64,000 nucleotides of DNA from Lepidodermella squamata (Eukaryota; Animalia; Gastrotricha). Location of the stretch: contig JBLDXI010000042.1 of NCBI GenBank assembly GCA_047495785.1, forward strand, positions 1,674,001 to 1,738,000. The letters are read 5' to 3'. Both the position numbers and the translations under genes were made by a program. Every line of letters begins with the position of its first letter. Position 1 is the stretch's first letter. Below the pieces are notes generated by a model. It ran no database searches. It was not told the DNA's origin and saw only the letters and a program-made list of their open reading frames with translations. This document shows positions 1 through 20,173 of this stretch, piece by piece.

Positions 1-10
1 ATTTTGCTAG

Positions 11-1554
11 AGATTCAGCGACGAGTCTTCAATATGTGGATATAAATTCCATGTATCCATACGTTCTGTGTAGCAAACAGTTTCCGTGCAATAACATCTC
101 GGCACAAGTATTAAGGTGGCGATTGAACGACGAAAAACTGAGAGCAAAGTTTTTCGACGAAAATGACCCAGCATTTGGCCTAGTTTCTGCGAAGTGTTGT
201 CCGAATCCCAGCCTAATCGTGCCATGTTTGCCTTATAAGTCCCCCGATGACGATCGCCTGGTTTTTATCAGTTGCAGAACATGCTATCTGGAGAAAAACG
301 TGACGACTAGATGCAATCATGACATGGATCAGCGCGCAATTTCCGGAGTTTGGACCAGTGAGGAGCTTCGCATGGCTGTTGTACAATTCGGTTATAACTT
401 GGTCGAGGTATACGAAATATGGCACTTTCCAGACCGTAGCAACTTGCAATTCAGAGAATTCATTCTCTCGCTTCAAAAATTGAAGCTTGAAAACACTGTT
501 CTTGCTCCAACAGTTGACGTCGAGCAATACGTCACCGAATGTCGGGAAAGGTACGGAATCGAGCTCGACCGGCAAACCATGCTGTCGCCGAATGCTTCGA
601 TGAAACAGATTTCCAAGATCCTTCAAAATAGGTAGGTCGATTAAACAATCTTGAAATTAACCCTAATTTATCTCTCAGCTTCTACGGTCGCTTTTGCCTA
701 CGAGCAAATAATTCCGTGGTGAAATATTTGGACTCGCCAGAACAGTTGATCGAGCTTTTTGAAGCTCCAAGCAAGGTTATTCACACAATTCAGCCAGTAG
801 GACCAGATGACGAGCACCAAAAAGTCCGCGTTTCATATTCAGACGCTCCAGAATATGAACAGCCATGCGCTACCAACTCTGAAATTACAGCATCCTTTAT
901 AACTTCTTACGCAAGAATGAAACTTTACGAGGAGGTTCGCAATAATTGGACTAAACGAATTTCAAGCTAATTAACTTTGATTTCAGATGGCCAAGCTGGG
1001 TTCCAGACTTGTATACTGCGACAGTAAGCAAATTCGCTACCTAAATTTCGTAGAATTTTGATAATCTTGTATTACGCAGCCGATTCGTTGATTTACACGC
1101 ACCAAGAGGGTGAATACAAAATTCCAGAGAGTCCATTTCTGGGAGACTTCAAGTCTGAATTGAGCGAGGGAGAATTCATTGAGTCTTGGGTAGCGATTTC
1201 GCCAAAATCCTATTCATTTGTCTCCAACTTGAGGTATAGAATTAATTTTTAGACTTGTTTTTTTTTTAATTAATTTCTTTTAGAACTGAACTCAAGTTTA
1301 AAGGAATAACCCAAAACTTGGCGGGGAAACGGTTGACTCACGAATCTCTAATTAAGCTGCTAACCGACTACCTTAACAATTTTGCTGCTGAAAGTGCGAT
1401 AACTGTCGATCAGACCGTATTTCGTAGGCGTCACGTTCCAGCATCCGTAACTCTTGAAAATATTGAGAAAACAGTATCCCCTCACCTTAATGACAAACGA
1501 ATATTTGATCCTTTGTCATTCACCTCTATCCCTTACGGATATCTTCCTCATTAA
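11..1554 (+). CDS. Protein-primed family B DNA polymerase, C-terminal part; exons 11-631, 679-934, 987-1023, 1080-1233, 1284-1554
   Basis: Motif A is DINSMYP. Removing GT-AG introns 632-678, 935-986, 1024-1079 and 1234-1283 restores KILQNS|FYGRF (motif B), YCDT|DS (motif C), KFKG and the C-terminal SIPYGY. Probable further acceptor at position 10. Confidence 0.95.
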
Positions 1555-1598: not shown

Positions 1599-2030
1599 AT
1601 GACAAAAAGTATCGCATCGGAGCGTTTAGCGCCTGAGAGCAAGGCCTTGTACGAATTTATCGAAGACGAGGTTACCTGCAGCATCTGCTTGGGAATAATG
1701 ACTTCTCCCGTCTACCTAACAAGTTGTCATCACGTCTATTGCGAATCCTGCCTATGCCGATGGGGCGAGAGATGCCGCGGTTCTGATGCTCGATCTCTTA
1801 TATTCAAAAGAGCGACTTGTCCCAAATGTCGAGAGTTTTACTCGCTGTTGGACATCAATCCTGGACCTGGTGTCGTCGAGCGGCTAGTTTCGCGCATGCT
1901 TTTCAGTTGCATTTATGAAAAGTATGGTTGCTCAGTGAAGCGTGACCATTGGGGCATCAGGGCTCATCAAAGGATCTGCAAGGAGAAAGGAGCTGCTAGT
2001 AAGCGCAAAGTTGCCCAACAGCTTGCATGA
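1599..2030 (+). CDS. RING-HC plus TRAF/Sina-type zinc finger protein (putative E3 ubiquitin ligase)
   Basis: CSIC..CHHVYCESC..CPKC RING, followed by CIYEKYGC..H...C zinc finger. Confidence 0.85.
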   Translation: MTKSIASERLAPESKALYEFIEDEVTCSICLGIMTSPVYLTSCHHVYCESCLCRWGERCRGSDARSLIFKRATCPKCREFYSLLDINPGPGVVERLVSRMLFSCIYEKYGCSVKRDHWGIRAHQRICKEKGAASKRKVAQQLA

Positions 2031-2194
2031 AAAAAAAAAATGCTTGATAATTTAGCGTCAATAATCCAAAGTTGCTCAACAGTTTGCATGTAAATACATC
2101 TCGCATTAACTTCAATAATCCATTAAATTCCAAATATAATATATATTTTTTTAATAATTTTAGAAAATTAAAAATTAAAAATTTCCGCCGAATC

Positions 2195-2571
2195 ATGGTG
2201 ATCGCCAAGTCCTATGCTGCGTATATCAGAACCGACAAAGATCTCCTATTTTATACGCCCTTCAACGAACAAAGCACGACTGATGATATGGCCAAGAGAA
2301 TGCGAGAATTCTGGCCAGCGAACTGGGGCGAAAAGCCTGGGGACATCAAGTTTGAATGCAAAGGCCGATCAATACGGAAGACAGTTCGCCTGTCAAGTAA
2401 GCTTTCCGCCATGCCTGACTAAACTTGAAAGTTTACTCGCTAGGTTTGAGCCGCTTGGTTGGTGGTCGCATGTACGTATTCTATGGGAAGGCGAAACTCG
2501 GGACAGCGACACCTGGAAAGGTGGACTGCCCCGCCTGCGAAAAAGGAGAGTGCATCATGTCAGAATTCTAG
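2195..2571 (+). CDS. UBL3/MUB-like ubiquitin-fold protein, copy 1 (intron 2397-2443)
   Basis: TDDMAKRMREFWPANWGE resembles the UBL3 signature (..VYDNWPMDW). Spliced C-terminus ends ..DCPACEKGECIMSEF*. Confidence 0.65.
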
Positions 2572-2667
2572 GTGGTGAACGCAGTGACTTATCAATTATT
2601 CCCCTCTGTTTATTCACATTAAACAATGTATATAAAATTTTGATTAATCTTAGACGTTACTTTAATC

Positions 2668-3043
2668 ATGGGATTCCGAGAACCCTCTTCATTCGAGTCG
2701 AGCCCTTCACCAGATGATGATCTCGAGATTGGCTATGCCGCAACGCTAATATGGCGGAATAAGGACCAAATAGTCATCCATTGCTGCAAGTCGTTTACTG
2801 TCGACGACATTATCTGGCAATTGTATCACGAGTGGCCCGAAAGTTGGGGCCTTAAACCGGCGTTGAGTAGCATTTACCTGTATCACTGGGGAGTTCCGTT
2901 GAAGCGAGAAGCCCGCCCCATAAGTAAGTTGTGCCAAGATGACCTCAAGCCCGTTTCAATATATCTTTTCAGAATATTGCGAGTACTATGGCCAAGGCGG
3001 TATAGAACTGAAGGTTAAAATCAGTGATGATGACGAGGAGTGA
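2668..3043 (+). CDS. UBL3/MUB-like ubiquitin-fold protein, copy 2 (intron 2924-2972)
   Basis: TVDDIIWQLYHEWPESWG; phase-1 intron at the same position as in copies 1 and 3; spliced end KYCEYYGQGGIELKVKISDDDEE*. Confidence 0.7.
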
Positions 3044-3130
3044 TTGATCGCATCTCTAGTAAATCGAGTCTCTAAGAAGGTTTTTTTTTCTTCTAAAAAT
3101 TAGAGAAATTTAAAACAATATTCAGCGAAC

Positions 3131-3377
3131 ATGAGGCTGCGAATTCGAATTGCAGATGGCCTCGAGCCAACTTTTTGTATCAGAGACATGGGACATTACA
3201 AAGCAAGTAATTTTGCGCTAGTTGAAATTTGCATCTCTTAACTGCTTCTTGCAATAGGAGTTAACAATTCGAAACTTTCCAGGCTATGCTCGCGTTTCCG
3301 TTGGCAACTCGGCGATAGTTAAGATGTATCGCCAATCTGAAACCGTCACCGTTATTTGCATCTATAAGAAGCAATAA
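3131..3377 (+). CDS. Small hypothetical protein (~63 aa), probably spliced (3203-3257, GC donor)
   Basis: ATG follows an acceptor-like TTCAG. MRLRIRIADGLEPTF...|ELTIRNFPGYARV...YKKQ* reads through only with a GC-AG intron; an alternative GT donor gives a different short product. Confidence 0.3.
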
Positions 3378-3433
3378 ATCGCCTTAATTGATTTGTATTG
3401 TGGACATTTTAGATAAATTTGAGAATATATTTG

Positions 3434-3829
3434 ATGGAAACTCCCCGCCCTTCATCTTCGAGCAGCATCGAGTCGCACCACTCGGCTGACTCCATGCGGC
3501 CTTGTGCTCCACGCGAACGCACTGTTGTTCTACGATGGATAGATGGTAGTGAAATCGTCATGCCATTTAGCAAATATTGCACGGTAGCCGATCTCATCTT
3601 CATGCTGTATGAAAAATGGCCGGCAGAATGGGGGGAAAGACCGCAGTACAGGAGACTTTTGCTGTGCGATAGTTACTGCCGAATTCCTAAATTCGCTCGA
3701 ATGATGGGTAAGTTAATGTTTATTAAATTCCACCGTTAAATGACTGAATTTTATTAACCTTAACTTACAGAGCTCGACAGACGATCTGGAAGGACGTTCT
3801 TGTTATTCGTCAAGCTGACAGCATACTGA
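3434..3829 (+). CDS. UBL3/MUB-like ubiquitin-fold protein, copy 3 (intron 3708-3770)
   Basis: VVLRWIDGSEIVMPF..TVADLIFMLYEKWPAEWGE..RLLL; spliced end ELDRRSGRTFLLFVKLTAY*. Confidence 0.7.
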
Positions 3830-3899
3830 CACGGATTAACTAACTAATAACTGTTTGCATGCATCAGCTAAATTTAGGCAGCATTATTACATAGCGAAT

Positions 3900-4211
3900 A
3901 TGGATAGTTTGGATTCCCTCAGCTCATCTGACGATTCATGCGTAGCAGACGATTTCAGCGTCCTTTTAACATGGATGAATGGTGACGAACTCATAATGAG
4001 ATGCCCTCGAACGGATTCTGTTGATGATTTGCTGTCAAGACTCTATGATGACTGGCCAGTGTATGGATGGGGAAGACGACCCGCGGATCCTGCCGTGTTA
4101 GCGCTGAGCAACGCCAGACAATGCTTACCAAGATCCCAACTGCTTATGAGGGATCACACTGGAGATGCTACGGGGCATGTCATCTTGAAGTTTTATGTAC
4201 ATTTGAAGTGA
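3900..4211 (+). CDS. UBL3/MUB-like ubiquitin-fold protein, copy 4 (intronless)
   Basis: LLTWMNGDELIMRCPRTDSVDDLLSRLYDDWPVYGWG...VILKFYV. Confidence 0.7.
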   Translation: MDSLDSLSSSDDSCVADDFSVLLTWMNGDELIMRCPRTDSVDDLLSRLYDDWPVYGWGRRPADPAVLALSNARQCLPRSQLLMRDHTGDATGHVILKFYVHLK

Positions 4212-4385
4212 TTCTCGCAATAGCTTGTATTATCGCCTCAGTATACCTTGTATATCAATCTATAACCTCATTATAAATAGGAATGTAAACTGTTTTTTAG
4301 AGTGATTAGCTTTGTATGTAAAATTGATCCCATCGGCAAATTTAGGCGAGTAATTTAAGGCTTTATATAGCATCAAAAGAGCAAA

Positions 4386-4610
4386 ATGGATTGGGGTAGC
4401 TCATCATCTGATGATTCATGCATAGCCGACGATTTCTGCGTCCTTTTAATCTGGGAGAATGGCAACACACTAACAACGAGGTGCCCTCGAACGGATTCTG
4501 TCGATGATTTACTGTCAAGACTCTACGCTCGGGGTGCGATCTTGGAGCTGCCGGGTTCTGGGGGACCGACTTTGCTTGCTGTATTTATTAAAAGGATTAG
4601 AACTAATTAA
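4386..4610 (+). pseudogene. Truncated duplicate of UBL3-like copy 4
   Basis: DNA closely matches copy 4 up to ..SVDDLLSRLY, then diverges and lacks the WP..W motif. Confidence 0.6.
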
Positions 4611-4649: not shown

Positions 4650-5585
4650 ATGATTAACATGTCATGTAAAATTGATTTCAACTCCGCCATGCATCCGAAT
4701 TTTGCGTGGGCGCTAGTTCGAGGTTCGAAGGTGGGACGCGATTTCAAGCCTCGGGTGACACTACATTGCCCTTATATTTTCAGCCATTTGACCTTCTTCG
4801 AGCCACTAGCAGCAGGTCCAGTGTGTCCCAGTCGATGATGAAAGTGATGTGCATCTCTGACACTCATAACGAAGACATCGTACCACTTGTTAGCAAGCTT
4901 CAGCGATCATCGCAAGCCGACATTTTGATCCATGCTGGAGATGCGACCACGTTCGGTAGTCTTGACGAAGTGAGAAATTTTGATTCTCAGCTTGCGAAAT
5001 TGAGACCGCTGTTTCACCAAGTAATTGTAATCGCTGGAAACCACGATCGCTCCTTACAATACGACCGCAATTTACTGCGCGATAATTGCACCTACTTGCA
5101 GGATAGCTCTGTAAAAGTGAATGGCTTTCTTTTCTACGGCGCTCCATGGTAATTTATAAGGCAATAATCATCGGCTTTGACGTGTGTGCAAAACAGGACA
5201 CCACTCAGCGAGAGCTGCCATTCTGCTTTTACGCTCAACAGAGGCAACGAACTCGGTGAAAAGTGGGCATTGATACCCGCTGAGACGGACGTTTTGGTAA
5301 CACATTGTCCACCGTTAGGTGCTCTGGATCAAACGTCAACAGGTGATCACCTGGGATGTCTCTCACTAGCTTATCATGTCTTGGGTCGGATTCAACCACA
5401 ACTCCATGTTTTCGGCCATTGCCACTACAGTAAGATATATCAAAACAACACACGAATCATATTACAGATTTATTTCAGGTAACGGAGAAATGCAATGTGA
5501 ATATACGCACTTTGTGAATGCGAGCATTTGCGATGATAACAACAGGCTTCAATTCATGCCGAGGCTGGTCGATCTCTACCATTAG
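4650..5585 (+). CDS. MPPED1/2 (239FB)-family metallophosphoesterase; introns 4731-4783, 5149-5196, 5430-5478
   Basis: Calcineurin-like motifs ISDTH, HAGD, AGNHD, VTHCPP, HVFGHCH and FVNASIC become contiguous after splicing. Confidence 0.9.
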
Positions 5586-6550
5586 TCGACCTTTGGAACC
5601 CACGATGACCAATTCCCGCCAGTCTGCTTGGCAATGTGCTCGTTATTCTGCTCACCCGCCGCCGCCTGCTCTTCCTTACTACGTAGCAAACGTGGTGATG
5701 CCGCTACCCGCGGATTAGTCGCGTTCAACGCTCCTGCTCTGACCATGTTTCGAATACGGTCTTGCATTCTCGGACTCAGATTAGCGTTCTTGTTAGTTGC
5801 CTTGTCGAGAAATTCTACCAACTCCCATGAATCTATCAATTGTCCTTCCGAGTTGACGTATTCGATTTTATTTGCAGGCGAAATATAGACTGATTGTGGC
5901 TTTGAACTCCCGCGCAAGTGATTCAAAATTCGAGCTGCAGCAGATTGTTGTGTTTTACTCGGGAAATTTTCGAGGATCCTGCCGTCCGTCAAGTTTACAA
6001 GACTGATTTTATCTTTCGGCTTCGCCTTCTGATCAACTATGTCCTCATCGTTGTTTTGTTGCTCGTCTTGGCTAAACTGCTCTATTTTTGGCGAAGTAGT
6101 ATTACCAATCACCCTGCGTTTGGGAGTGCCGTTGGGCGAAGTCCTGTATTTCTTCGCTAATTTTCGCAAGATTCCGGGCGTTGGTGCAGGGCTTTCGTCC
6201 TCCTGCTCTTCCGCCTCTTCATCTGCCTCCTGCTGCTGCTGCTCCTTTTCCTCGGCTTTACCTTCAAGGATTTTCAATTCCTTTACGACTCGTTGAAACT
6301 CTCGAAACGCAGAGTTGAATTTGTACAGCTTTTCGCGGGCATCTTCGTCGCTGACTTCAGATAACGATGTCAGCAGCTGAGTCGCATTACGTTTAAGATG
6401 ACCTTTTTGCGCAGGTTGAGAGGCTTCCTTTATCAACCGCTTGCTCTCTGCCTCGAGTGCTGATGGTGCTTCCGTTTTATTAGCTTCACTAGAAGATCCA
6501 AGCACAAGAGCGTAACGCTTCGCATGCAGACCAATGTCTGTCGATTTCAT
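5582..6550 (-). CDS. Polinton hypothetical protein (322 aa, coiled-coil/acidic; C-terminal QTGG protease-site motif)
   Basis: Long ORF whose start overlaps the stop of the upstream gene (ATGA); ends KQTGGNWSSWVPKVD. Confidence 0.75.
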   Translation of the reverse strand: MKSTDIGLHAKRYALVLGSSSEANKTEAPSALEAESKRLIKEASQPAQKGHLKRNATQLLTSLSEVSDEDAREKLYKFNSAFREFQRVVKELKILEGKAEEKEQQQQEADEEAEEQEDESPAPTPGILRKLAKKYRTSPNGTPKRRVIGNTTSPKIEQFSQDEQQNNDEDIVDQKAKPKDKISLVNLTDGRILENFPSKTQQSAAARILNHLRGSSKPQSVYISPANKIEYVNSEGQLIDSWELVEFLDKATNKNANLSPRMQDRIRNMVRAGALNATNPRVAASPRLLRSKEEQAAAGEQNNEHIAKQTGGNWSSWVPKVD

Positions 6551-6966
6551 GGTTTTCGGGTTGCCTTAACAATAGCTTCAACGATTGTAGGCAGTATTCC
6601 TATAACAATCCTGCAGATAAACGTCATAGTCGAATTTGAAAAATGCATACCTGCTGCAGCAGATAATAGCGGAACAACGAACGCAGCACCGCCTTTTTGA
6701 ACTATGAATGTTCGGTTACCACTGATTGTTCTGTCACTACTACTCAGTTTTTTGATAGATTTCCTAAATTTACGCAGCTTTGGTGCCAAATTATCCGGAA
6801 TCTGTAGATTTTTGTTGATAAGATTCAGGCAGATTTCACTGATAATTCTGATCACGGAATCAGGAGCTATCGATAATAGCTGTCGTCTTCTGTCGGCTGT
6901 TTTTGCTTTATGAATTTCCCTTAAAAAGCCCAGTACTCGATCAGATTTATTCAATGGCTTACTCAT
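6547..6966 (-). CDS. Virion protein with adenovirus pX/mu-like C-terminus (intron 6600-6650)
   Basis: Removing a 51-bp in-frame GT-AG intron gives QKGGAAFVVPLLSAAAG|ILPTIVEAIV, resembling adenovirus pX GGFLPALIPIIAAAIG. Confidence 0.75.
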   Translation of the reverse strand: MSKPLNKSDRVLGFLREIHKAKTADRRRQLLSIAPDSVIRIISEICLNLINKNLQIPDNLAPKLRKFRKSIKKLSSSDRTISGNRTFIVQKGGAAFVVPLLSAAAGMHFSNSTMTFICRIVIGILPTIVEAIVKATRKP

Positions 6967-7031
6967 GCTTAATAGACATGCTACCAATAATTTAAGAAAA
7001 AAGTCCGTTTCATCTCATTTAAATATACATT

Positions 7032-7768
7032 TTATTTAGGAACATAAATGACACCAGGGTAACTTCCTACCCCGGTTCTGTAACGCATGTATTCAGGACA
7101 GTTAGGACTCAGATCTATTAACAAATAATTGTGACTGCCTTTGCTAGTTTCCATTTCAAAGCTCTCAACTAAAAAGCGCCACCGCAACGGTTCCAGCTGC
7201 AGAGCAAGGTAGCGAAATGCTGTGAGGTCCGCTCGATGCCGAAAAATGAACAAGTATTTCGCATTTAGGGTCATTTCTTTGGAAACTTTTCCCTTACTGA
7301 ATATGGCTTGTTGGGTGAAAAACACTGACAAGTTCATGTGATGAGAGTATCGATAGAATAACTGTAAAATCTTGGGATCGTTTCGACCCGTATCATATAG
7401 ATCATCTATGAGGAGTAAGGTGTGTTTGTCTTCACTATTCTCGAATTCTTCAAAATTGAGTTGTTCCAATCCTTTCCGAAAGTCGATACTTACTCCACGA
7501 ATCCTCTCAACTTCGTCTTTGATTTGCTGATGCATCTTAGTTTCGACGCCGTAAAACCATACGATTCTTTGCGGCGGCGGAGAGATGGACTCGAGATCGC
7601 ACAGAATGCTCCGAATAAGCCATGTTTTACCTGAAAAGTACCTTCTAAATACCAACTATTCAACTTGCTATATATCATACCTGCTCCGCTGGGACCTATT
7701 ACAAGAGAGCAGAATGGAGCTTGCAGACTCAGCGAAAAGTCAGTCTCTGATGGCAAATTGCTTGACAT
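7032..7768 (-). CDS. A32/FtsK-HerA-like genome packaging ATPase (intron 7631-7680)
   Basis: Walker A GPSGAG|KT restored by splicing; Walker B LLLIDD; HHMNLSVFFTQQ motif. Confidence 0.93.
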
Positions 7769-8304
7769 GATTGGCGACCGTCACACGTGGATAATTTGTG
7801 CGCGGCCTTGCTTAGCTTAAATAGCTTTTTCACTTGGTCTACTACAAACTTGTCAGTCTCTGGCGGCATCGGCAGCATCCGCGTAATGCTATTAATTGTT
7901 GCGCCCCGCGATAGCCAATGCAAACTCCAATATGCATAGTACCCACAAACAGCTGATGTATCCCCCTGGTATTTTCTCCCGTTAAAATCATAGTAATCTG
8001 CCCCATTTATGTCCTTTAAAAACTGCTCAATATCTTGATTGTAGAAAAAACCCCGTTGGCCGTAGCTGTCAAATAGTGTTGCGGGTTCATTATTTTGTGG
8101 AACGTATATAGATAGCCAGTGGCGCCCAGGCTGGCCTGCAGCGTCCGTATTTACAATCAAGGCCATCGGCCGATCACTCAGTCTTCGATATTCAGCTAGG
8201 AAATCCCACGGAATTGTCTTTTTAACAGCAAGTTTACTTATTATCTTGTCACAGGCTAATAGACAGTCAAGTTGGAGCGTGTTAAGTTGCTCTGCGGCAT
8301 CCAT
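7729..8304 (-). CDS. Adenain-like cysteine maturation protease
   Basis: IVNTD..PGRHW, FDSYG and Q....VCGYY catalytic motifs. Confidence 0.92.
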   Translation of the reverse strand: MDAAEQLNTLQLDCLLACDKIISKLAVKKTIPWDFLAEYRRLSDRPMALIVNTDAAGQPGRHWLSIYVPQNNEPATLFDSYGQRGFFYNQDIEQFLKDINGADYYDFNGRKYQGDTSAVCGYYAYWSLHWLSRGATINSITRMLPMPPETDKFVVDQVKKLFKLSKAAHKLSTCDGRQSCQAICHQRLTFR

Positions 8305-8307
8305 TTG

Positions 8308-9597
8308 TTACGTAAAGTCGACCAAGACGTTCCTTGCAAAGTTTAGCTCAATGACTTGGTCAGTTTCAAAGTAGCAAAGCAATATAAGATTGTCCTCCAA
8401 TGCCGATTTAAATAATAGGTCTATATTAAGGACCCCAGTTTTCACCAAACTATATGCACTTCGACTCGAATCGGGTGAAAGGTCAAACCCGATGAACGAA
8501 AACCCATCTTTCGAATACTCGGATAGCGTGATACCATTGGTCTTGGCTGAATATGGGAACAGCGTCTCTCTTAGCGCGTTTAACGCTCGAGCCGATTTAT
8601 TACTACCATCTCCGATATCAAGCGGACTGTTGGGTACATGCTCGCTGTCTATCATTACTGAGACGCGCTGCAACCCGGCGTTTTTGAAATCATATGGGCT
8701 GGTGCTAAAATCACCCTTAAAGTCCTTATCGCTCACAAAACACATCACTAATCGTCTTGGAATTTTCCCGATAAGAACATGTCCCAAATTATAATTTAGC
8801 GATCCCTTTTGCAAGTTCAATATCTTGATAAAAGATCTATTAACGCCGTATTTAGCAGTAGTTTTCGTTAGGGTTCGGTTTAACGCCAAAGTGAATTGCG
8901 GGGACACTCGGACACGACGTAATTTCAGCTTGGCATCGGTCACAGTCAACGTGAATTTCTCTTCATCTGTACTTGCCTTCATTAGCACAAATGCATCGGA
9001 AGCCCTAACAAACGTTAGCTTGAAAGGCGTTGCCGGTATCAGGAATTTCGGTTGGGAAAATAGTTCTAAATGCGGCCGACCTATTAGCACCATTTCACCT
9101 TCCTTTGCCCACGCCAACCGCTTAACGTGACCTTTGCCTGCGACGTCGCTCACCTTGCTCGCTTCGTCGGCAAAGTAGCCTTGAAGTGCTAGGTAGCTAT
9201 CCTTAACAGCATGGTCATAGCTTAGAAGTGTTGAAATGTATGCTTTGTAGTTGTAAGTTGGAGCTGGTTCGCTTATTTGCGTGTTATTGATACTCATGTC
9301 TATCTGACTGAACATGCTATGTAATAGCAGGTTGACTGGTGCGCACGTGATCGCCGTTTTTGCCTTGGCTGGGTCCGTGTTTACGACTTTACAGGTAATT
9401 TCAACATACGATCGGCTCAGGTCTGTCCAGTCGTTGCTCGGTGGAACGTCAAAATCAATCCTTGACTGATTAGCTATAGCTGAAACTGGGCCATATTCTG
9501 TAATGTAGTTACTCTCAATCTCTACTTGCGTAGGGTTCAGCGAAAAAACGTTGAGCTCAGCGCGAATAGCGTTCTCAGAAGATGGGTGTACGTACAT
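8308..9597 (-). CDS. Major capsid protein (double jelly-roll, Polinton PY/hexon-like)
   Basis: 429 aa; ELNVFSLNPTQ..IE, PVNLLLHSMFSQID, YNYKAYI and PRRLVMCFV..F.G...SPYDF motifs of animal Polinton MCPs. Confidence 0.9.
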   Translation of the reverse strand: MYVHPSSENAIRAELNVFSLNPTQVEIESNYITEYGPVSAIANQSRIDFDVPPSNDWTDLSRSYVEITCKVVNTDPAKAKTAITCAPVNLLLHSMFSQIDMSINNTQISEPAPTYNYKAYISTLLSYDHAVKDSYLALQGYFADEASKVSDVAGKGHVKRLAWAKEGEMVLIGRPHLELFSQPKFLIPATPFKLTFVRASDAFVLMKASTDEEKFTLTVTDAKLKLRRVRVSPQFTLALNRTLTKTTAKYGVNRSFIKILNLQKGSLNYNLGHVLIGKIPRRLVMCFVSDKDFKGDFSTSPYDFKNAGLQRVSVMIDSEHVPNSPLDIGDGSNKSARALNALRETLFPYSAKTNGITLSEYSKDGFSFIGFDLSPDSSRSAYSLVKTGVLNIDLLFKSALEDNLILLCYFETDQVIELNFARNVLVDFT

Positions 9598-9644
9598 GAT
9601 TACTATTTACTATACATCTCATTCGACGCCTTTAAATACAGTTT

Positions 9645-10116
9645 TCAGAAGTAGACACGTTTCCCTGCCTTCTTTTTACCGACTGCTTTGCTTTTACGCT
9701 TAGCAATGACGCGGCGGCCCCGGCGGCGCCTGCGTCTTCCAGTCCCAATTTGCGATCCTACATTTGCAATGACATCCTTGGCTACTCCCTTTAATCCTTC
9801 CACTGCTCTCCGCTTCAGTATCGTTTTCGGACTGGCGTCCTTATTTTCCAACAAATCGCTTGCGATATTAGCCGTCGTGTGACTCAGATTTCGGAATATC
9901 GGTCCCAGCAATGGAATAATATGATTACGAAAAAATCCGGCGGCTACGCTTCCGAATCCGTTTCCTGTCTATAATAAACTATGCCTAATCAATCTAATAT
10001 TTATCACTTGATGTTACCTGATAAGTAGGGAATACGAGTGATTGACCACGAAACGGTTCTATCCCGTACCCGCTTTGTTGCAACAAAAACGATTCATAAG
10101 CATCTGCTGAATGCAT
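9645..10116 (-). CDS. Core/membrane-lytic precursor (pVI/pVII-like) with Arg/Lys tail; intron 9969-10017
   Basis: Spliced product MHSADAYESFLLQQSGYG...YQ|TGNGFGSVAAGFFRNHIIPLLG...QIGTGRRRRRRGRR; three QxGxG motifs. Confidence 0.8.
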
Positions 10117-10122
10117 GCTTCT

Positions 10123-11869
10123 TTATTTAGCTATAGGTCTAATTTGCACAAGTATTACTGCTTTACCGCTAACAAATTTCACTGGCAAGCCAGAGTCTTT
10201 AAATATCTGAATCTCTATTACGGATAACACGCGGCGTTTAATCGGAACAAATATTGGCTTTTCAAACATTATGGAGAAAAATCCGCCTCTTTCATTAGTT
10301 TTTTCTGTTGGTATCACTCGCAGAAGTGGAGTGCGCGTGTTTCCCACGTACACGTCATCAATTACATCAGCGTACAAAAACAAGAAGGGCATTCCATAGT
10401 CCAACTGAGGCGCGAATTTCGCTGTCATTTTCTCTTTGACATCATGATAAGTGTAGGTGTATTCTACTGTTGATATGACTTGCTGCTCTTTCGAGTCTGA
10501 TTGGGGTTTAGCTGAAGCACTGATGTTCGCAGGCTCGTTCTCGTCAGGGACTTCGTCCGAGGCCGCGTTCTGAGCTTCGCCGCTGGAGCTCGTAGTGCTG
10601 GGCGCTGGTACGTTCTCATCAGGCTCGTCATTGTTCCCGGGGACGTCGTTCGAGGCTGCGTTCTGAGCTTCTGCGGGGTTGTTGGGTGTGACTTCGCCCT
10701 GAGCTTCGTTGTTGGAGATTGCGGGAGGATCGGTGTTGGAAGCAGGTACGTTCTCGTCAGGGACGTCGTCCGAGGCCGTGTTCTGAGCTTCGCTGCTGGA
10801 GCTTGGTGGAGGCTCTTTCTTGGCTTCGACTGCGTTCTGAGCATCGCTGCTGGAGCTTGCGGAAGGCTCTTTCTTGGCTTCGACAGCGTTCTGAGCATCG
10901 CTGCTGGAGCTTGCGGGAGGCTCGCTGTTGTTTGCGGCTGCACTATTGCTCGGCTCTTCGGTTTCTTCCGCTACATCTTCATGCTGTTCGATATCCACGT
11001 TGTCCTCGGCATTTTCCGCCTCGGATCCCCCCCATTCATCGTCTCCATATGCTGCTACAAATTGAACCGGTTCATTACGTTTCGCTATCTTCCGAGGTGG
11101 TTGCTCTTCTGTTGGAGCCGATCGCCGGATCCTACTAGTCTTTGCTATCTCCTCCTGCATGAATAATTGACCAGTAACTTTAAGCTTGTTGTCATTTATT
11201 GATGACAATGCCATGCGATATGGTATTTTCTGGCGGTTTCCTCGAATAACATATCCCAGCATGTGCATGAACGCTTCGGCTTTCTCCCTATATTTCCGCT
11301 GGTTTTTCATGTTCTTTGCGCCGTACTCGTTGAATGCTATGAAGGCTTCTGGGAATCCAAGGACTTGAGCTAATTCTTTCGGTATGAATATGCCCCAACG
11401 TCCTTGTTCTACCTTTACGGATACCCGATTTGCTATTTTCGTATAGTCAAATGATATAGCTTTGGTTATCTGCTTGATTTCTGTCACCATGTGCTCCAAC
11501 AACTCCTCGATGCTAGAGTAGTAGACGCCACCAACTTGGCACTCGTGCATTTGCGACGCGTCAAATGGATCCGCCAAGTTTACTTCAGTATTGTGCACCC
11601 AGTCACTGTCAAAGATATAATATTTTGTTGGTTCCAGTGATTCCCACGCTGCCGGTCCGTTAAATTCTACCAGCCCCATTTCCCATTGACCTACGTACGT
11701 ACGCGTTCACTTAACAGTTTGGTTTATTTCTTTTTGAATACTTACCTACTGTACCTAGATCAATCTCATTAGCTAATTTCACGCGATACGAAGACGGCGT
11801 GTTATCAGGAAATAGATCATTCGATGCGTTCGACGGCAAATAGAGCAGAAATTCTTGCTGTGCGCTCAT
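10123..11869 (-). CDS. Minor capsid protein (penton) with a large acidic low-complexity insert; intron 11691-11745
   Basis: N-terminus FLLYLPSNAS..FPDNTPSSYRVKL..GTV|GQWEMGLVE; C-terminus LYADVI..YVGNTRTPLLRVIP..IEIQI.KD.G.PV.F..GK. Confidence 0.9.
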
Positions 11870-12211: not shown

Positions 12212-13453
12212 TTATTTCCGCTTCCGCTTCGATTTTTGCGCCTTTAAATATTCATTTTCTACGGCTTTGATTTCTCCGATCGGTTCCCACGAGCTCTGCG
12301 ATTTAGGAAACCCTACCCAACTGACCAGCACTCTAGTTGTTCCGTCCTTGAACTTTCTCTTTTCCTTACCAACTTCGGCTATCAGGTACTCATCAGGAAG
12401 CTTGACCTTTTGAAGCTCGTAACTATAAAAAACTCCGGCCAGCGGCTCTGTGTAGTCTCCCTTCTCCTTATTCCACTCATTGAGCTTATAAGTGTAGGGA
12501 CCGAATTTGTCTGGCTTAATTATCCTCGAAATTTTAAAGTATTCGTCCGTGTATACAAAGTGGCGGGCTCGATCGAATACCCCCCTTTCAGCTGATATCC
12601 GAACTACATCTCCGACCTGGAATTTCGCCTTTGATTTTCTCTCTTTTTTATGTTCTTCAACAGGACCGTATATATTTTCATAAGCTTGAAATTGCTTCAG
12701 GCTGTCCTCGTATATGTCCAGATTGAGGTCTTTGTCGCTTTCAATTTTCCTACCGGTTTCTTTGTCATTATACAGCTCCGCCGGTGTAAATTTCGTTGAA
12801 GAGTGAATGCTCTGATTATAGACTCGGACAATATCCTGCAAGTCATCTACGTATCTTCTATCATTCCGTGCTATCGCTAGTTTCGCAAGTCTCATGCGAA
12901 GCAATTTGTTGAACGACTCAATCTGAGGAACCTTCTTCTCTGAATTAGTTGCAAAATAATGTATTGATTCTGATTTCAGATATTGCTCTACATGCTTGTT
13001 GAAAAATTCTGATCCTCTGTCAAATACGACAGCTGACGGTTTTTGCTTGGCATCTCTCAAGACCAATTTCAGTGCTCTTAACGTTTCTAGACCAGTCTTA
13101 TTGAGCATCGGCTGCACCCAGGCGAATCGGCTATATGTATCCTTTGCTGTCAACAAGTATTGAACGTTATCGTTCTCGTCTTTGACGTTTTTCACATCCA
13201 GCAAGTCCATGGCGAACATACTTCTTCTACTGAAACAAGCTACTTTACGCATTAGCCGATTCCGCGTTCCAACTTGCTTATACACGCTCCATGCTCGCTG
13301 GTTCCCGAGCCACTCTCGCACTTCCTTGAAAGAAATCCTGCGATTTGGATACTTGGCCTTATACGAGTTGTACAGCGATGATATACTGCCGAGACTCCCC
13401 TTCTCCGCTGGTGTAAAATATATTTTCCTGAGACCTTCATCCGTAGCCGACAT
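12212..13453 (-). CDS. Retroviral-like (rve) integrase with C-terminal chromodomain
   Basis: DDE motifs FAMDLLD, VFDRGSEF and IESFNK; chromodomain-like VLVSWVGFPKSQSSWEP. Confidence 0.93.
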   Translation of the reverse strand: MSATDEGLRKIYFTPAEKGSLGSISSLYNSYKAKYPNRRISFKEVREWLGNQRAWSVYKQVGTRNRLMRKVACFSRRSMFAMDLLDVKNVKDENDNVQYLLTAKDTYSRFAWVQPMLNKTGLETLRALKLVLRDAKQKPSAVVFDRGSEFFNKHVEQYLKSESIHYFATNSEKKVPQIESFNKLLRMRLAKLAIARNDRRYVDDLQDIVRVYNQSIHSSTKFTPAELYNDKETGRKIESDKDLNLDIYEDSLKQFQAYENIYGPVEEHKKERKSKAKFQVGDVVRISAERGVFDRARHFVYTDEYFKISRIIKPDKFGPYTYKLNEWNKEKGDYTEPLAGVFYSYELQKVKLPDEYLIAEVGKEKRKFKDGTTRVLVSWVGFPKSQSSWEPIGEIKAVENEYLKAQKSKRKRK

Positions 13454-13497: not shown

Positions 13498-14426
13498 ATG
13501 GAAAATTATTCATACATCCGATTAGTTGGATCTGGATCTTTTGGAAGTGTAAGCTTACAGCGACACGTTAAACTTAACCGAATCTTTGCTGTGAAAATGA
13601 TAAATACCACGCATCCTGTATTTCTTGAATCTGCACATCGCGAAGTCCAGTCTCTCCAATTGCTCAAAAATGCTCCGAACGTCGTCAAGTAATGATTAGA
13701 TAACAATCCGTTGCATTTAATGCTCATTTTTCGCACAGATTACACGAGGTACTGTATACGTCAAGACGGGCTTTTCTCGTCTTGGAATGCCATCTTATGG
13801 ATTTGAGAAAGCTGATAGAACTCCTGTCTCGACCTTGGCCGCTCACACTACTCGAACGATGGTTCAGTCAGCTATTGTCCGCTCTGGATTACATCCATGA
13901 GAAAGGCATCATTCATCGCGATGTCTGCCCACAGGTTTGCTTTTCCCAACGATGCGTGTACCCAACTACCTTTCTTCTACAGAATGTTCTACTTCAATCC
14001 AGCTGGGTCGATGTTTCCCTCGGAGATTTCGGCATCTCTCGATTAGTACCTGACCATGATACCTGCCCTAACATGACAGGGACTGTTACCGTTTTTCGCT
14101 ATCGGGCGATTGAAATCATGTTCCCAAAACCTTACTACACTAACAAGATTGATATTTGGTCACTAGCTGCTACTATCATTGAGCTCGTCACTCTCACTCC
14201 TTTTTTTAACGCTCGAACCCCTGTAACCATGTTAGCTGATATGAAATCTAAAACTTCTAGTCGCGATGTTTTCTTTAGGTCGTTAGAGACATTTGTGCAT
14301 TGCGATTTTTCTGAATATCGTCATCTGCTAACTACGCTGTACTCGATGTTTGATAACGACCCGATCTACCGTCCAACTGCTAGCACCTGTTTATATCGCG
14401 CTTCTCTTCGAACCTGGTATTATTGA
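13498..14426 (+). CDS. CMGC/CDK-like Ser/Thr kinase; introns 13689-13738 and 13935-13982
   Basis: GSGSFG, FAVK, AHREV, HRDVCPQ|NVLL, DFG, TVTVFRYRAIE and DIWS motifs. Confidence 0.9.
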
Positions 14427-15062
14427 ATGCAAACTTTCGACATCAATGTTTCAGTTTCAAACGTTGTCGCTACTTTCCACGCTGGATGCACTATTGATTT
14501 AAAGCATCTGGCTAATCACGGAGTTAACACATATTATGATAGCAGAAAAATCCCTGTTTCAACTAAGATTCGATTTCCCTCTGGTGCCACTGCAATGGTT
14601 TACAGCAGCGGTAGTGTTATTGTCATCGGCGGCAGGGGATCGCGAAATGTTCCAGATTTCGAGTCTCAGGCGTTCCTAATCATGCTAAAGCTAAAAAAGT
14701 GGATGTCATCGTCTGAAATATCATTCAATAATTTCAAGATACAAAATATTGTCATCACCGGACAGTTACCCTTCCGGTTTTCAAACATTTCATCGCTTTA
14801 CTCTAGTCTCTCCTCTCTGCCAGGACTACGAGTAGTTTACATACCAGAATCATTCTGCGCTATGCGAATCACTTTGAACAATAAGAAGATAAGCTTCTTC
14901 CCGAGTTCTCACAAGTTTAACATTCTCGGCGTTGATAGCATAGATCAAGGATTATCTATTATTCAGTCCTTTGCTCAGCTGTGTATCAACATCTACGAGA
15001 AGGATCTATCAGACCTTACCCTGACCAAAGAAGATCTGGATTTTCTATTTGGCAATATTTGA
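14427..15062 (+). CDS. TATA-binding protein-like factor (most like TRF2/TBPL1)
   Basis: Two TBP repeats: DINVSNVVATFHAGCTIDLKHLA..ATAMVYSSGSVIVIG and FKIQNIVITG..YIPESF..KISFFPSSHKFNILG. Confidence 0.85.
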   Translation: MQTFDINVSVSNVVATFHAGCTIDLKHLANHGVNTYYDSRKIPVSTKIRFPSGATAMVYSSGSVIVIGGRGSRNVPDFESQAFLIMLKLKKWMSSSEISFNNFKIQNIVITGQLPFRFSNISSLYSSLSSLPGLRVVYIPESFCAMRITLNNKKISFFPSSHKFNILGVDSIDQGLSIIQSFAQLCINIYEKDLSDLTLTKEDLDFLFGNI

Positions 15063-15425: not shown

Positions 15426-16916
15426 ATGTCCGAACTACTCGGGTTAGTCGCACTAATGCTACTTGCAATACTATTATGTGCAATAATACTAAGTCCCGAC
15501 GCATCCTCATATCAAGGCGGCAATTTTGAGTTGTTCGCCGAGCATTACGGATTAAAAATGCAAGAAATTAATGACCAGCTGATAAATCCACTGCCTAAAG
15601 AAGGCGGCCGAAAAATGCCATTCTTCACCTTACACATGGGGCAACTTCACAAGGGTGATTCCTTTGTTGTCATAGCGAGCCGTGGATCTGGAAAATCTCG
15701 CATTTGGGAAGAGTGGAGAAATGATTTCATTTCCATCGGGGAATACCTTGTCGTTAAAGTTGACAACCTGGATTTTAACGAGGCGCTGGCCAACTTCTGG
15801 GAACAGAAAGGTGTTCTCGACGCTGCAAACATTGGTGATTACATCGCCAACCACTGGACAGAACAAGAAATGGTCGATTTTGTTCATTCTCGTACGGTTC
15901 AGCTATTGCTAGGCGGCGAGCACAGATCTGAAATCATCCGGTCGCTCAGGGCCAGCAATGAAGACGAGAAGGTAATATTCGCACTGCTGATCATTCTGTA
16001 CTGCCCTACGTACCAACTGGAAACAGCAATAGACTTCGTCAATGAAATTTTTCCGACGAAATGCTATATGTTTAGTTGTGATACAAAAGTGACACAACAT
16101 CAGTGTACCCCAATGGAGATCAACTACAATACGAACAGTCCTCTGCTGAAATATCTCTTGATACTACCTCCCGGCAACACTAAAATAAATGTGCTATGCT
16201 CAATCGCAAAAGCAAGAGGACGCAACGGAATAGATTCTGTGTTGCCTATTCAAGGTGGAGTTGAGCAACGGGCTTATTCCATGTTCAAAAGCTTGGTGGG
16301 AATCCTGAAGTCTAGAGTTAACAAGAAAACGTGGGTGGTTTTCGATGGCATAGACGAAGTGGAAATGTTCGACCTTGTTAGGAAAGACAAGTGCAACTCG
16401 CCGCCCTTCTCGAAAGTGATCAAATCGTTTCGCGATATTCTTAAAATGGCTGCTGACAACGCTGCAAAGTTTCAGGTTATGCTATTCCTGCCGCAGTGTC
16501 CTGGCCTCGACTTGAAACTGTCGCTTCCTGACTGGAGGGAAGACAAAGTTAAACTGGTGGAAATAATCTGGACCAAACCGTTGCTTCATGCGTACGGCGA
16601 TTTTGTTGTATCAAAGTTTCCACTGTACCAACGGGAAAGATTTGCGAGGTTCTTATGGTATTGGACAGTTCCAGAGAACTTTTCTACGCTAATCGGCGGC
16701 GACAATTGCGTCGATTATTTTTTAGCAGCAGTCGACTGCCCTCGCGAATTCAATCATTTGCTGAAATTGTTCATCCAGGAACTGGAAGTCGAAAATGAAC
16801 ACTTTGTAGGCAAATCCGACTGCTCAACTATCCAAAAGGCAGTTGGAGCATTCCAGGGAAATGCGAGCAGAGATGAAAGAAAAATATCCACTGAATATAC
16901 AAAGGACGAACTTTAA
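15426..16916 (+). CDS. Intronless P-loop NTPase with N-terminal signal/anchor and C-terminal KDEL
   Basis: Hydrophobic N-terminus, Walker A ASRGSGKS, Walker B VVFDGIDE, ends TKDEL*. Confidence 0.85.
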   Translation: MSELLGLVALMLLAILLCAIILSPDASSYQGGNFELFAEHYGLKMQEINDQLINPLPKEGGRKMPFFTLHMGQLHKGDSFVVIASRGSGKSRIWEEWRNDFISIGEYLVVKVDNLDFNEALANFWEQKGVLDAANIGDYIANHWTEQEMVDFVHSRTVQLLLGGEHRSEIIRSLRASNEDEKVIFALLIILYCPTYQLETAIDFVNEIFPTKCYMFSCDTKVTQHQCTPMEINYNTNSPLLKYLLILPPGNTKINVLCSIAKARGRNGIDSVLPIQGGVEQRAYSMFKSLVGILKSRVNKKTWVVFDGIDEVEMFDLVRKDKCNSPPFSKVIKSFRDILKMAADNAAKFQVMLFLPQCPGLDLKLSLPDWREDKVKLVEIIWTKPLLHAYGDFVVSKFPLYQRERFARFLWYWTVPENFSTLIGGDNCVDYFLAAVDCPREFNHLLKLFIQELEVENEHFVGKSDCSTIQKAVGAFQGNASRDERKISTEYTKDEL

Positions 16917-17689: not shown

Positions 17690-18442
17690 TGAATAATGTT
17701 GCTAACTCTTGACAGCCAACGAACAACGAACAGTGCTTGTGTACTTGGCTGTAATGCGAATAAACTTTATCATTATTTTCCAGTTTCCAGTTCGCTAAGC
17801 GTTTTAAAACTCATTTTAACAATTACACTTTCGCCAAAGAACCGGAAAACGCCATCAATTTAATTCATCTAGGCACTTTTGCCAACAAAATGGATTTCCT
17901 CTCTAACAAATCCGAAAATATCCGCTGATTTAGTCGAAGCTGTTCGAAACAATCGAATGCCCGTCTCTTTATAGTTTATAGTTTTGTTGCTTCAATTGAT
18001 AAATAGTAAATAGGAAATATCTTTGCCGTTACACTTTCATGTGTCCGAAATCAGTTTCAGAGCATGTGTGACTGGATAAAATGAAAAATAATTGAGCTCA
18101 TTTTTCTTAATTTTAATGGCCTCAACACTCAACACTCATTCGCAGGTTATTCGCAGGTTATACCCCCTGCTTTTCCTTGAGCTAAAAAATGGATTTTTTC
18201 GATGAAACGCGTGCTTTATTTGCGCCATTTTATAAAACAAAATGACTAAAAGAAACGTGAAAACACAAAAAATTTATAAACGATATGAACGAATATCAAT
18301 GAAACGACCATTTTATTTTCATTTTATTTTAAAATGAAATAAAATTGAGATAAAGAAACGCACCCATAGTTTATTCGCACTACAAATAAGTACATAACAC
18401 GAACACAGTTCGTTGCCTTTCAAGAGTTAGCAACATTATTCA
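17690..18442. repeat. Inverted duplication (~80 bp) of the stop and 3'UTR of the mucin-stalk gene
   Basis: TGAATAATGTTGCTAACTCTTGA at 17690-17712 is the exact reverse complement of 18420-18442; weaker similarity continues to the AATAAA. Confidence 0.7.
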
Positions 18443-18838
18443 GCGTTGTAAATGAACACAGCGACTCCATAGACTGCGTAAATCAGTCCAAATGTGATTT
18501 TGCTCGAGCTGCTCTTTTGCGCAACTGGGGTACTCTCGGCTTTCGATGCTGGGGTAGTTGCTGATGATGCGGCAGCAGAAGCTGTAGATGAAATAGTCTC
18601 ATCCTGTTTTGACGTCGAAACTCCGGTGGTTGTTGTGGTTGACTTTATTGTCATTTGCGTGCTGCTCTTTTGCGCAACTGGGGTACTCTCGGCTTTCGAT
18701 GCTGGGCCAGTTGCTGATGATGCGGTCTCACCCTGTTTTGACGTCGAAACTCCGGTGGTTGTTGTGGTTGGCTTTGTTGTCATTTGCGTGGTACCTTTAG
18801 TCGACGTCGGGGATGCTGTCGTGGCTGGGACTGCGGCG

Positions 18839-18878
<40 letters not shown>

Positions 18879-20173
18879 AAGAGCTCGTCGTTCTTGACGT
18901 CGTTGTAGTCGTCATTGTAGTTGTGGTAGTCGCTGTGAATGGGCAAAAAATACATCTCGTCCTTAGCATTATTGCTGAGCATTACAGAAAATGAAGTTCA
19001 TCTCTTGCCTGGAATGGAGATTAAAATTTTTAAATAGGTAGGTTATCTCTTTCAAAAAATTAAAATGTCATCTAATTGTACAGGAACTTCAAAACGTTGA
19101 AACCTAAAACAAACAAAAAATTAAACAAAGAAGCTCCATAATCTTATCGATTTTTGTCTGCTTGAAAATGCCAGGGCTCTAGAATCGAACTCGAAAATCG
19201 ACTTAAACCCGAACCTTAACCAAGCCAGAACTTCAACTCTAATCCTAACTCCTAGCTACACGATTTCATGAAAATAAATATTCATGAAAGGCGATATTGT
19301 CATAAATATTTCTACACACTAATTTTCCCTAAATCTGTGATTGGAGTGAAAATTGGAGTGTTGTGTATTCATCGAGAAAGTATTGAGAAAAAGTAGGCTT
19401 GGCGAACGCTGGTCCTTACGTGGAGCATAGTAGTCTCTGCATACATACATCAGCGGGTTGTAATTGCTCAGATCCAGCTTCGTATAAAGAGCAACAGTAG
19501 TCAATGCGTCTTGCGTCCGAAAATTTGCGCCTAATTCCAATTTTGTGACATCGTAAAAATACGGCTTATCTTTCGCTTGGAACTTCGACACAGGTGCCCA
19601 TGATTGATATTCATTGATTGTTACATTGAAGACGCGCCTCATTCCGTCGTAGCCAATGCGAACAAAGTTCCATGATTGCCATTGTAAATCGCCGATGATG
19701 AAAGTTCCGCCGTCCATACCCAGGTAGTCGGTGGAGTAGCTCAACGTCAGGCTGGCCGTCTGTACTTTTACCGCAAGGCGAGGCATTTCTGTTCCGCCTA
19801 AAAACGAAATGATCCCGCCTGACATTGGACTCCATTTACCAACGTAATAGTAGAAGGTGAGTAGCCAGCCGTTGTAGCTGAACAGCCATTGATAATCTGG
19901 TGATTGGACCACTGTTATTCCCGTTTCACCGGTGAAGCATGTCCCTGGCGTTCCCGATGGGCCAATGCAATCGTACTGCCAGCTATTGTGCTTCTTTTCC
20001 AGCGAAGGGCTGCCTATGTTCACCTCGTTACTTAACGACGTGTTATCCAGAGGGAAAAGCAGCTTAAGGTCGCTTTTTTGAGGCAGTAGCGCTAGTAATG
20101 GATGTTGTGCACTTCCATCAAATGGCAAATTTAACAGCGAAAAAGCCGCTACTAATAGTACTCTTCCGAACAT
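18436..20173 (-). CDS. Surface glycoprotein: signal peptide, beta-sandwich (LamG/ConA-like) domain, Thr/Ser mucin stalk, hydrophobic (GPI/TM) tail; exons 20173-19420 and 18932-18436
   Basis: GT-AG phase-1 intron 18933-19419 joins ..DYYAP to PTTTT; duplicated ASKAESTPVAQKSS units; (GTA)n at ~18839-18878 encodes poly-Thr. The LamG call is by resemblance only. Confidence 0.75.

Follow-up and report, generated by a model that had tools for sequence, protein, structure and literature searches.

In the current view, Mavericks/Polintons are endogenous viruses by which genes pass from one animal species to another, and it is their cargo that decides how they interact with the host. Genes for ubiquitin or RING proteins are frequent in viruses, and both, like ubiquitin-like cargo domains, are already known from viruses and Mavericks. 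To our knowledge, proteins of the MUB/UBL3 family are among the few known regulators that act on the charging of E2 enzymes. Here we describe a block of genes (positions 1599–4610, forward strand) in a 64,000-nucleotide (nt) stretch of DNA, the whole of which was analyzed and is hereafter called the window. The block consists of one RING open reading frame (ORF) followed by five small paralogous genes, copies 1 to 5, whose products are probably MUB/UBL3-like, MUB-derived, anchor-less ubiquitin-fold proteins, and we assign it to the accessory genes of a Maverick/Polinton (adintovirus-like) element that is integrated into the genome of an invertebrate.

MUB/UBL3 proteins combine a ubiquitin fold with a conserved terminal CAAX box and a nearby upstream cysteine, human UBL3 being 117 amino acids (aa) long (PMC10511055). 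They are found bound to the backside of E2 enzymes, and a MUB loop known as the lap-bar, (K/R)xPFG, situated before the last strand, blocks the access of E1 to E2 (PMC4996978); UBL3 is, moreover, required for MARCH-type RING ligases (PMC9001657). The present proteins resemble this family in size (103–110 aa vs. 117), in the beta-grasp order of their secondary structure, in the lack of a Gly-Gly end and, behind helix 1, in a W-P..W core alignable with that of UBL3; in copy 1, the tail is rich in Cys and includes a CAAX-like tetrapeptide, reminiscent of the Cys-plus-CAAX tail that defines UBL3. They differ from it by the lack of a terminal CAAX box and of a lap-bar, by a Pfam score below the cut-off, and by their genetic setting, a multi-copy divergent family on a mobile virus-like element as opposed to a conserved single host gene.

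In nematodes, the WASP/WOSP proteases and KRMA kinases of the Maverick cargo carry N-terminal ubiquitin-like domains, which govern how abundant the protein is and pass from element to element through recombination (Widen et al., bioRxiv 10.1101/2022.07.12.499685). Like those domains, the proteins described here show low identity to ubiquitin, are encoded in a Maverick cargo region beside intron-bearing cargo genes, and are modular and fast-diverging; as compared by description, the nematode domains are fused to a protease- or kinase-like effector, whereas ours are stand-alone, arranged in tandem and paired with a RING gene. Viral ubiquitins (baculovirus v-ubi, giant-virus ubiquitins, pestivirus inserts) provide another precedent, with the same fold and the top matches among viral structure models, and differ in being close copies of ubiquitin, usually ending in Gly-Gly, whereas the present family is predicted to be non-conjugatable, is MUB-like and appears as an orphan. 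In a literature search, no precedent emerged for a family of several stand-alone MUB/UBL3-like genes that lack the anchor and lie next to a RING gene, and none of the papers listed joined UBL3 with Polintons/Mavericks.

A first-pass annotation of this DNA had proposed a RING gene beside a tandem array of ubiquitin-fold-like genes, with four full paralogues and one truncated. This arrangement was borne out by Pfam RING models and by a leave-one-out test of paralogy, with copies 1–4 open and copy 5 a broken partial duplicate (Table 1). In the latter test, a leave-one-out profile was searched against 2,089 stop-to-stop fragments from a six-frame translation of the window, and yielded E-values of 1.8e-15 for copy 4, 5.8e-15 for copy 2, 2.5e-13 for copy 3, 1.7e-7 for copy 5 and 3.3e-5 for copy 1 (the most divergent of the copies), as compared with an E-value of ~2 for the best unrelated fragment. 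The paralogy of copies 1–5 is beyond chance. The profile of the family revealed no further copy elsewhere in the window, and it does not match the mini-gene that separates copies 2 and 3.

Two finer features of the array, a W-P core motif in the full copies and a phase-1 intron position common to three of them, had also been read off at first sight, and both are present. The core S/T-V/T-x-D ... W-P-x-x-(x)-W-G is common to copies 1–4; copy 5, which keeps only the N-terminal part of the domain, is without the WP..WG segment. The introns of copies 1, 2 and 3, as seen in the alignment and in the splice models, combine a GTAAG-type donor with an AG acceptor, are all in phase 1 and fall into one alignment column. 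Across the block, introns measure 47–76 nt and end in TTTCAG-type acceptors, features that at first suggested a nematode host, for which no confirmation was obtained. Once spliced, copies 1–3 encode 109, 108 and 110 aa, respectively, which is near the length of the intronless copy 4 (103 aa), and each of their second exons supplies an alternating hydrophobic stretch at the place where a beta-grasp needs its last strand.

The gene that precedes the array is predicted to encode an intact, small TRIM-like RING E3 with ligase activity. All eight zinc ligands (8/8 by regular-expression check) are present in C3HC4 cross-brace spacing at residues 27–77, and the protein scores above the gathering threshold in four Pfam models (zf-RING_UBOX, zf-C3HC4, zf-RING_5 and zf-C3HC4_2), with 30.1 bits for zf-C3HC4 (the gathering scores relevant to this study are 21 bits for zf-C3HC4, 23 for Rad60-SLD_2, 25.8 for DNA_pol_B_2 and 32.6 for rve). 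Its closest PDB matches are the RINGs of TRIM30 and TRIM5 (E 3e-8 to 2e-7). Compared with TRIM-type E3s, it thus shares the complete ligand set and the best structural-database match, and it differs in being only 143 aa long, without a B-box, a coiled coil or a substrate-binding domain. Toward the C-terminus there is a Cys/His cluster (C104, C111, H117/H123, C127), and SIAH1 weakly matches residues 70–128 in the PDB search (E 0.09). A word-index homologue search with the RING protein gave no close relative, and a single-sequence AlphaFold2 model of it (predicted local distance difference test, pLDDT, of 46.6) was unusable. Among adinto-like viruses, TRAF-like accessory genes have been listed (PMC8502044).

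At the nucleotide level, the 3' end of the RING gene overlaps the first copy of a 28-nt direct repeat (89% identity; positions 2006–2033 and 2067–2094, starts 61 nt apart), which looks like the footprint of a small duplication.

The C-termini set the five small proteins apart from classical modifiers. Ubiquitin, NEDD8 and SUMO have an exposed or processable C-terminal Gly-Gly, which is absent here (0/5 copies), and a terminal CAAX box is found in none of the copies. Three of the last 20 residues of copy 1 are cysteines, and a CAAX-like tetrapeptide lies in this tail, though not at its end; the tails of copies 2–4 are without cysteine, and the C-terminus of copy 2 is acidic. These tails agree with the initial impression that no copy ends in di-Gly or a clean CAAX box and that copy 1 comes closest to the latter. 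Judged by these ends, the copies are predicted not to be conjugatable as ubiquitin-type modifiers and to have no prenyl anchor.

The fold of the family was approached through copy 4, from which all fold evidence comes, using an AlphaFold2 model with a five-sequence alignment of the copies as input. The model shows the beta-beta-alpha-beta...beta strand order, as in a beta-grasp. In a Foldseek comparison with the PDB, the leading matches are all ubiquitin-fold proteins: Arabidopsis MUB3 in its E2 complex (4x57) ranks first (E 1.3e-3, template modeling (TM) scores 0.53/0.58), and mouse UBL3 (1wgh) ranks seventh; ubiquitin, NEDD8 and Hub1 score almost as well as MUB3. Against the BFVD library of viral models, ubiquitins of giant viruses, pestiviruses and baculoviruses lead. 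The proposed ubiquitin fold was thus recovered in copy 4 as beta-grasp order, ubiquitin-fold matches and MUB3 in first place, all from a model of low confidence, and, as far as such a model shows, this suggests that the copies are beta-grasp proteins.

Sequence comparisons point in the same direction. In PDB sequence searches, for which copies 1–3 were used exon by exon, UBL3 is the top match of copy 3 (E 0.66), as well as of the family profile (1wgh and 2gow, E 0.036); for copy 4 alone it ranks second and third (E 0.26–0.31), after a weak match to a fimbrial subunit. Every one of the UBL3 alignments passes through the W-P..W core. With regard to Pfam, the sole match of copy 3 is Rad60-SLD_2 (PF13881), the MUB/UBL3 family (E 0.0022–0.0029). 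For copy 4, Sde2_N_Ubi comes first (E 0.003) and Rad60-SLD_2 second (E 0.24, 12 bits); the three other copies (1, 2 and 5) gave no match to Rad60-SLD_2. Structure and sequence lines therefore converge on MUB/UBL3, none of them being significant singly.

The likeness to UBL3/MUB proteins that the first-pass annotation had claimed was upheld in so far as this is the nearest known family by structure, by PDB search and by Pfam; it was not upheld as membership, all links being sub-significant and the CAAX box and the lap-bar absent. The HMMER search with Rad60-SLD_2 was divided in the same way: the sole match of copy 3 is the family expected, and its 18.1 bits lie below the cut-off of 23. The lap-bar motif (K/R)xPFG is absent from the alignment of all copies; copies 2, 3 and 4 keep only a proline at a lap-bar-like place, an equivalence that depends on the low-confidence model, and copy 1 has none. 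With no terminal CAAX box, no lap-bar motif and a score short of the Pfam threshold, the copies are not classed here as members of MUB/UBL3.

Beyond these distant links the family is, by the searches made, an orphan at the sequence level. A word-index homologue search with copy 4 retrieved nothing, and an exhaustive hidden Markov model (HMM) search with the five-copy profile retrieved no true relatives among 1.84 billion representative proteins. Two bacterial repeat proteins (Calx/VCBS-like and Cna-B-like) that matched the profile were rejected as spurious, their scores adding up over 5–7 repeats.

The main rival to a MUB/UBL3 connection, which we regard as unlikely, holds that the copies are of the same generic type as the ubiquitin-like modules of nematode Maverick cargo, free-standing here because they were split from, or never joined to, catalytic partners, and that their resemblance to UBL3 is a general beta-grasp likeness. 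Modular ubiquitin-like domains are indeed reported in Maverick cargo (bioRxiv 10.1101/2022.07.12.499685), a precedent absent from the first-pass annotation, the UBL3-specific scores are all sub-threshold, ubiquitin, NEDD8 and Hub1 nearly equal MUB3 in Foldseek, and enzyme-type accessory genes (metallophosphoesterase, kinase) lie near. What weakens this explanation is that the genes are stand-alone: they stop after ~105 aa with no fused catalytic domain, and the 5' ends of the kinase and phosphoesterase genes are free of matches to the family profile. Furthermore, it is with UBL3 specifically that the W-P..W core aligns, no structure matches better than that of MUB3, and the precedent comes from nematodes, whereas a nematode host found no confirmation here.

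The history of the MUB/UBL3-like family, as far as it can be read from the divergence of its copies, appears to be a long one. Copies 1–3 are 19–32% identical to copy 4, with saturated synonymous sites, and the family is therefore old and not the product of a recent gene accordion. The accordion-style expansion initially proposed for the array is contradicted by these values: copies 1–4 are anciently diverged, and only the pair of copies 4 and 5 reflects a later duplication, of which copy 5 is degenerate. This pair shares 122 nt at 85% identity, with both flanks duplicated too; copy 5 has one internal deletion, and its unit is ~130 nt shorter (repeat spacings of 480 vs. 348 nt). A 36-nt repeat is found both at the 5' end of the metallophosphoesterase gene and in the spacer between copies 4 and 5, and the duplication must therefore have taken in the flank. 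Poxvirus gene accordions are similar in showing tandem paralogues of a host-interaction gene, here with a younger pair that has duplicated flanks; the present array differs in that copies 1–4 are old, the young duplicate is degenerate and no recent expansion of copy number is seen.

As a measure of constraint, the ratio of non-synonymous to synonymous substitution rates (dN/dS) was of use for one comparison and not for the others. For copies 4 and 5 it is ~0.32 over 40 codons (7 synonymous and 8 non-synonymous codon differences), in line with constraint on few codons, and it is weak evidence because copy 5 is degenerate; among copies 1–4 it is uninformative because dS is saturated. A second line is the retention of open frames (103–110 codons), splice sites and the core motif in four copies despite saturated synonymous sites, to be compared with 0.16% open frames among random 105-codon strings of the base composition of the window.

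These observations bear on the view that the copies are functionless, decaying duplicates in an endogenised element, their open frames being chance survivals and the genes silent. We consider this improbable, and less so the generic modules discussed above. The clear degeneration of copy 5, the lack of homologues among the 1.84 billion representative proteins and the loss of two features of the presumed ancestor (prenylation box and lap-bar motif) would all fit such decay. It is difficult to reconcile with four copies that keep their frames, one shared splice position, their lengths and the core motif in the face of saturated synonymous divergence (the chance of even one random open 105-codon frame being ~0.0016), or with neighbors (the polymerase with its introns, the RING gene and the integrase) that look intact. 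Least probable of all, to the point of being very improbable, is that the proteins have another small fold, e.g., that of a virion or DNA-binding accessory protein, and that the weak matches are artefacts of a short amphipathic helix and strands: the confidence of the model is low (pLDDT 57; residues 70–97 below 50) and no search reached conventional significance, whereas Pfam HMMs (two copies), PDB searches (two copies and the profile) and Foldseek (two libraries) converge, and the second exons supply the final alternating hydrophobic strand expected of a beta-grasp.

Overall, the explanation we favor, with a confidence somewhat better than even, is that of a Maverick accessory block made up of a RING ligase and of MUB/UBL3-like binders of E2 enzymes or ubiquitin receptors. 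The element would encode a TRIM-like RING E3 together with a family of stand-alone, ~105-aa ubiquitin-fold proteins whose nearest known relatives are MUB/UBL3. As they appear to be neither conjugatable nor lipid-anchored, the copies would act by non-covalent binding, and, by analogy with MUB/UBL3, the likeliest partners would be ubiquitin-binding domains or E2 enzymes of the UBE2D class, the latter contacted on their backside. Most likely, the copies are soluble proteins of ubiquitin fold that cannot be conjugated and would have E2 enzymes or ubiquitin receptors as binding partners, possibly in concert with the RING of the element. They could modulate or supply this RING ligase, or compete in soluble form with the membrane-bound UBL3 of the host, and their divergence into four long-lived paralogues may reflect different partners or an arms race. 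A MUB-type blocking of E1 is doubtful because the lap-bar motif is absent. The block as a whole suggests that the element interferes with the host ubiquitin system.

Several points weigh against this explanation. The model of copy 4 is of low confidence (pLDDT 57, predicted TM score 0.46, residues 70–97 below 50), and all links to MUB/UBL3 are sub-significant (18.1 vs. 23 bits in Pfam; E of at least 0.036 in PDB sequence searches; E 1.3e-3 in Foldseek). Neither the terminal CAAX box nor the lap-bar of the family is present, and the exhaustive profile search brought no true relatives. The dN/dS value of copies 4 and 5 depends on 15 differing codons, the adjacency of the RING gene does not show joint action, and the copies are known here from DNA sequence alone.

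A more specific version of the favored explanation would have the element take a host MUB/UBL3 gene, strip it of its lipid anchor and diversify it into soluble binders of the E2 backside that work with the element's own RING to redirect or blunt host ubiquitylation. We regard so complete a history as doubtful and rather unlikely. The first-pass annotation had likewise proposed UBL3 copies captured by the element that work with its E3, perhaps in egress or immune evasion; the capture, the cooperation and these roles are all conjectural. Possible targets, if it took place, would be the UBL3/MARCH-type control of membrane proteins or the sorting of vesicles, and the family would then include the first mobile-element-encoded regulator of the E2-charging step. 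If the broader link to MUB/UBL3 is true, it would give a mobile element a route to disturb host ubiquitylation upstream of the E3, and would offer a natural set of diverged MUB-fold variants to compare.

Table 1. Features of the RING/ubiquitin-fold block and of the surrounding element (positions within the window)
Feature	Position	Strand	Description
Protein-primed family-B DNA polymerase, 3' part	1-1554	+	Cut by window start; several short GT..AG introns
RING gene	1599-2030	+	143 aa; C3HC4 RING at residues 27-77; C-terminal Cys/His cluster
Ubiquitin-like copy 1	2195-2571	+	Exons 2195-2396, 2444-2571; phase-1 intron 2397-2443 (47 nt); 109 aa
Ubiquitin-like copy 2	2668-3043	+	Exons 2668-2923, 2973-3043; phase-1 intron 2924-2972 (49 nt); 108 aa
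Unrelated mini-gene	3131-3377	+	Two exons, 56 aa; phase-1 intron 3207-3282 (76 nt); between copies 2 and 3
Ubiquitin-like copy 3	3434-3829	+	Exons 3434-3707, 3771-3829; phase-1 intron 3708-3770 (63 nt); 110 aa
Ubiquitin-like copy 4	3900-4211	+	Intronless, 103 aa; copy used for structure model
Ubiquitin-like copy 5	4386-4610	+	Broken partial duplicate of copy 4 unit
Calcineurin-like metallophosphoesterase	4650-5585	+	Short introns; Metallophos E 3e-11, Metallophos_2 E 2e-9; exons read by eye
Presumed virion/morphogenesis module	5582-11679	-	Unknown ORFs and those listed below; Pfam matches sub-threshold only, none for the presumed capsid ORFs; assignment inferred from gene order
Packaging-ATPase-like ORF	7032-7655	-	Pox_A32 E 0.017, below cut-off
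Adenain-like ORF	7729-8304	-	Peptidase_C5 E 0.11, below cut-off
Large ORFs of the module	8308-9597, 10123-11679	-	Part of the presumed virion/morphogenesis module
Integrase	12212-13453	-	rve core 32.7 bits vs. 32.6; C-terminal chromodomain E 4e-5

The genes of the element follow each other in the order polymerase, RING and ubiquitin-fold block and metallophosphoesterase on the forward strand, then presumed virion ORFs and the integrase on the reverse strand. Such a gene set is that of a Maverick/Polinton (adintovirus-like) element, with polymerase and integrase both above their Pfam cut-offs. DNA_pol_B_2 matches the polymerase at the ORF 36–635 with 32.5 bits (cut-off 25.8), and between its successive ORFs there are intron-like gaps of ~65–90 nt with GT/AG ends. 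The polymerase gene is split by introns and not broken, and the genes of the element therefore appear to be adapted to expression in the host nucleus. The metallophosphoesterase gene lies directly 3' of the ubiquitin-fold array; a chimeric gene of copy 5 and the phosphoesterase was considered and rejected, because the latter has a plausible first exon and a start codon of its own. Within the presumed virion module, the ATPase-like and adenain-like ORFs stand in the order expected of a Maverick/Polinton, and neither of these two ORFs matched anything in a PDB sequence search. The large ORF of the module at 10123–11679 contains, at 10529–10941 (reverse strand), an acidic, Ser/Ala/Pro-rich low-complexity insert built of 54- and 62-nt tandem units. 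A repeat search gave no long inverted repeat with an arm in the first 20 kb, and the left end of the element lies outside the window.

Just beyond the integrase, a protein-kinase gene fragment (Pkinase E 8e-21) and a TBP-like gene (TBP E 3e-15) adjoin each other without any spacer (13782–15062, forward strand). Both may be further cargo of the element; TBP-like, TRAF-like, UCH and OTU accessory functions are listed for adinto-like viruses (PMC8502044). They are followed at 15426–16916 (forward strand) by an ORF of 496 aa, without Pfam match, that has a hydrophobic N-terminal segment.

The rest of the window is of a different character. Scans of the whole window for Rfam families and transfer RNAs gave no matches. 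A Thr-rich, mucin-like ORF with internal repeats of 129–153 nt lies at 18436–18969 (reverse strand), and, at 27059–29002 (reverse strand), an ORF of 647 aa whose product includes the domain of a reverse transcriptase (RVT_1, E 8e-43) represents a separate retroelement in the host DNA. A segmental duplication links 30.7–34.7 kb with 45.5–49.1 kb (and also with 23.3–23.7 kb) at a spacing of ~14.5 kb and 74–91% identity, and covers a gene with astacin-like (HExxH), CUB and Kringle parts as well as a shared downstream segment that occurs three times. A perfect 300-nt direct repeat (55109–55408 and 57901–58200, starts 2.8 kb apart, in a GC-richer stretch) is located within a CPVL-like serine carboxypeptidase gene, where it could mark a recent insertion of the long-terminal-repeat type or an assembly artefact. 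An exact look-up of an exon of a host carboxypeptidase gave no entry. The best homologues of this exon, in a mollusc and in ticks, reach only 43–44% identity, and those of fish, insects and other arthropods rank below them; the host is not human. Introns of the host genes are ~50 nt long, as in an invertebrate-type genome.

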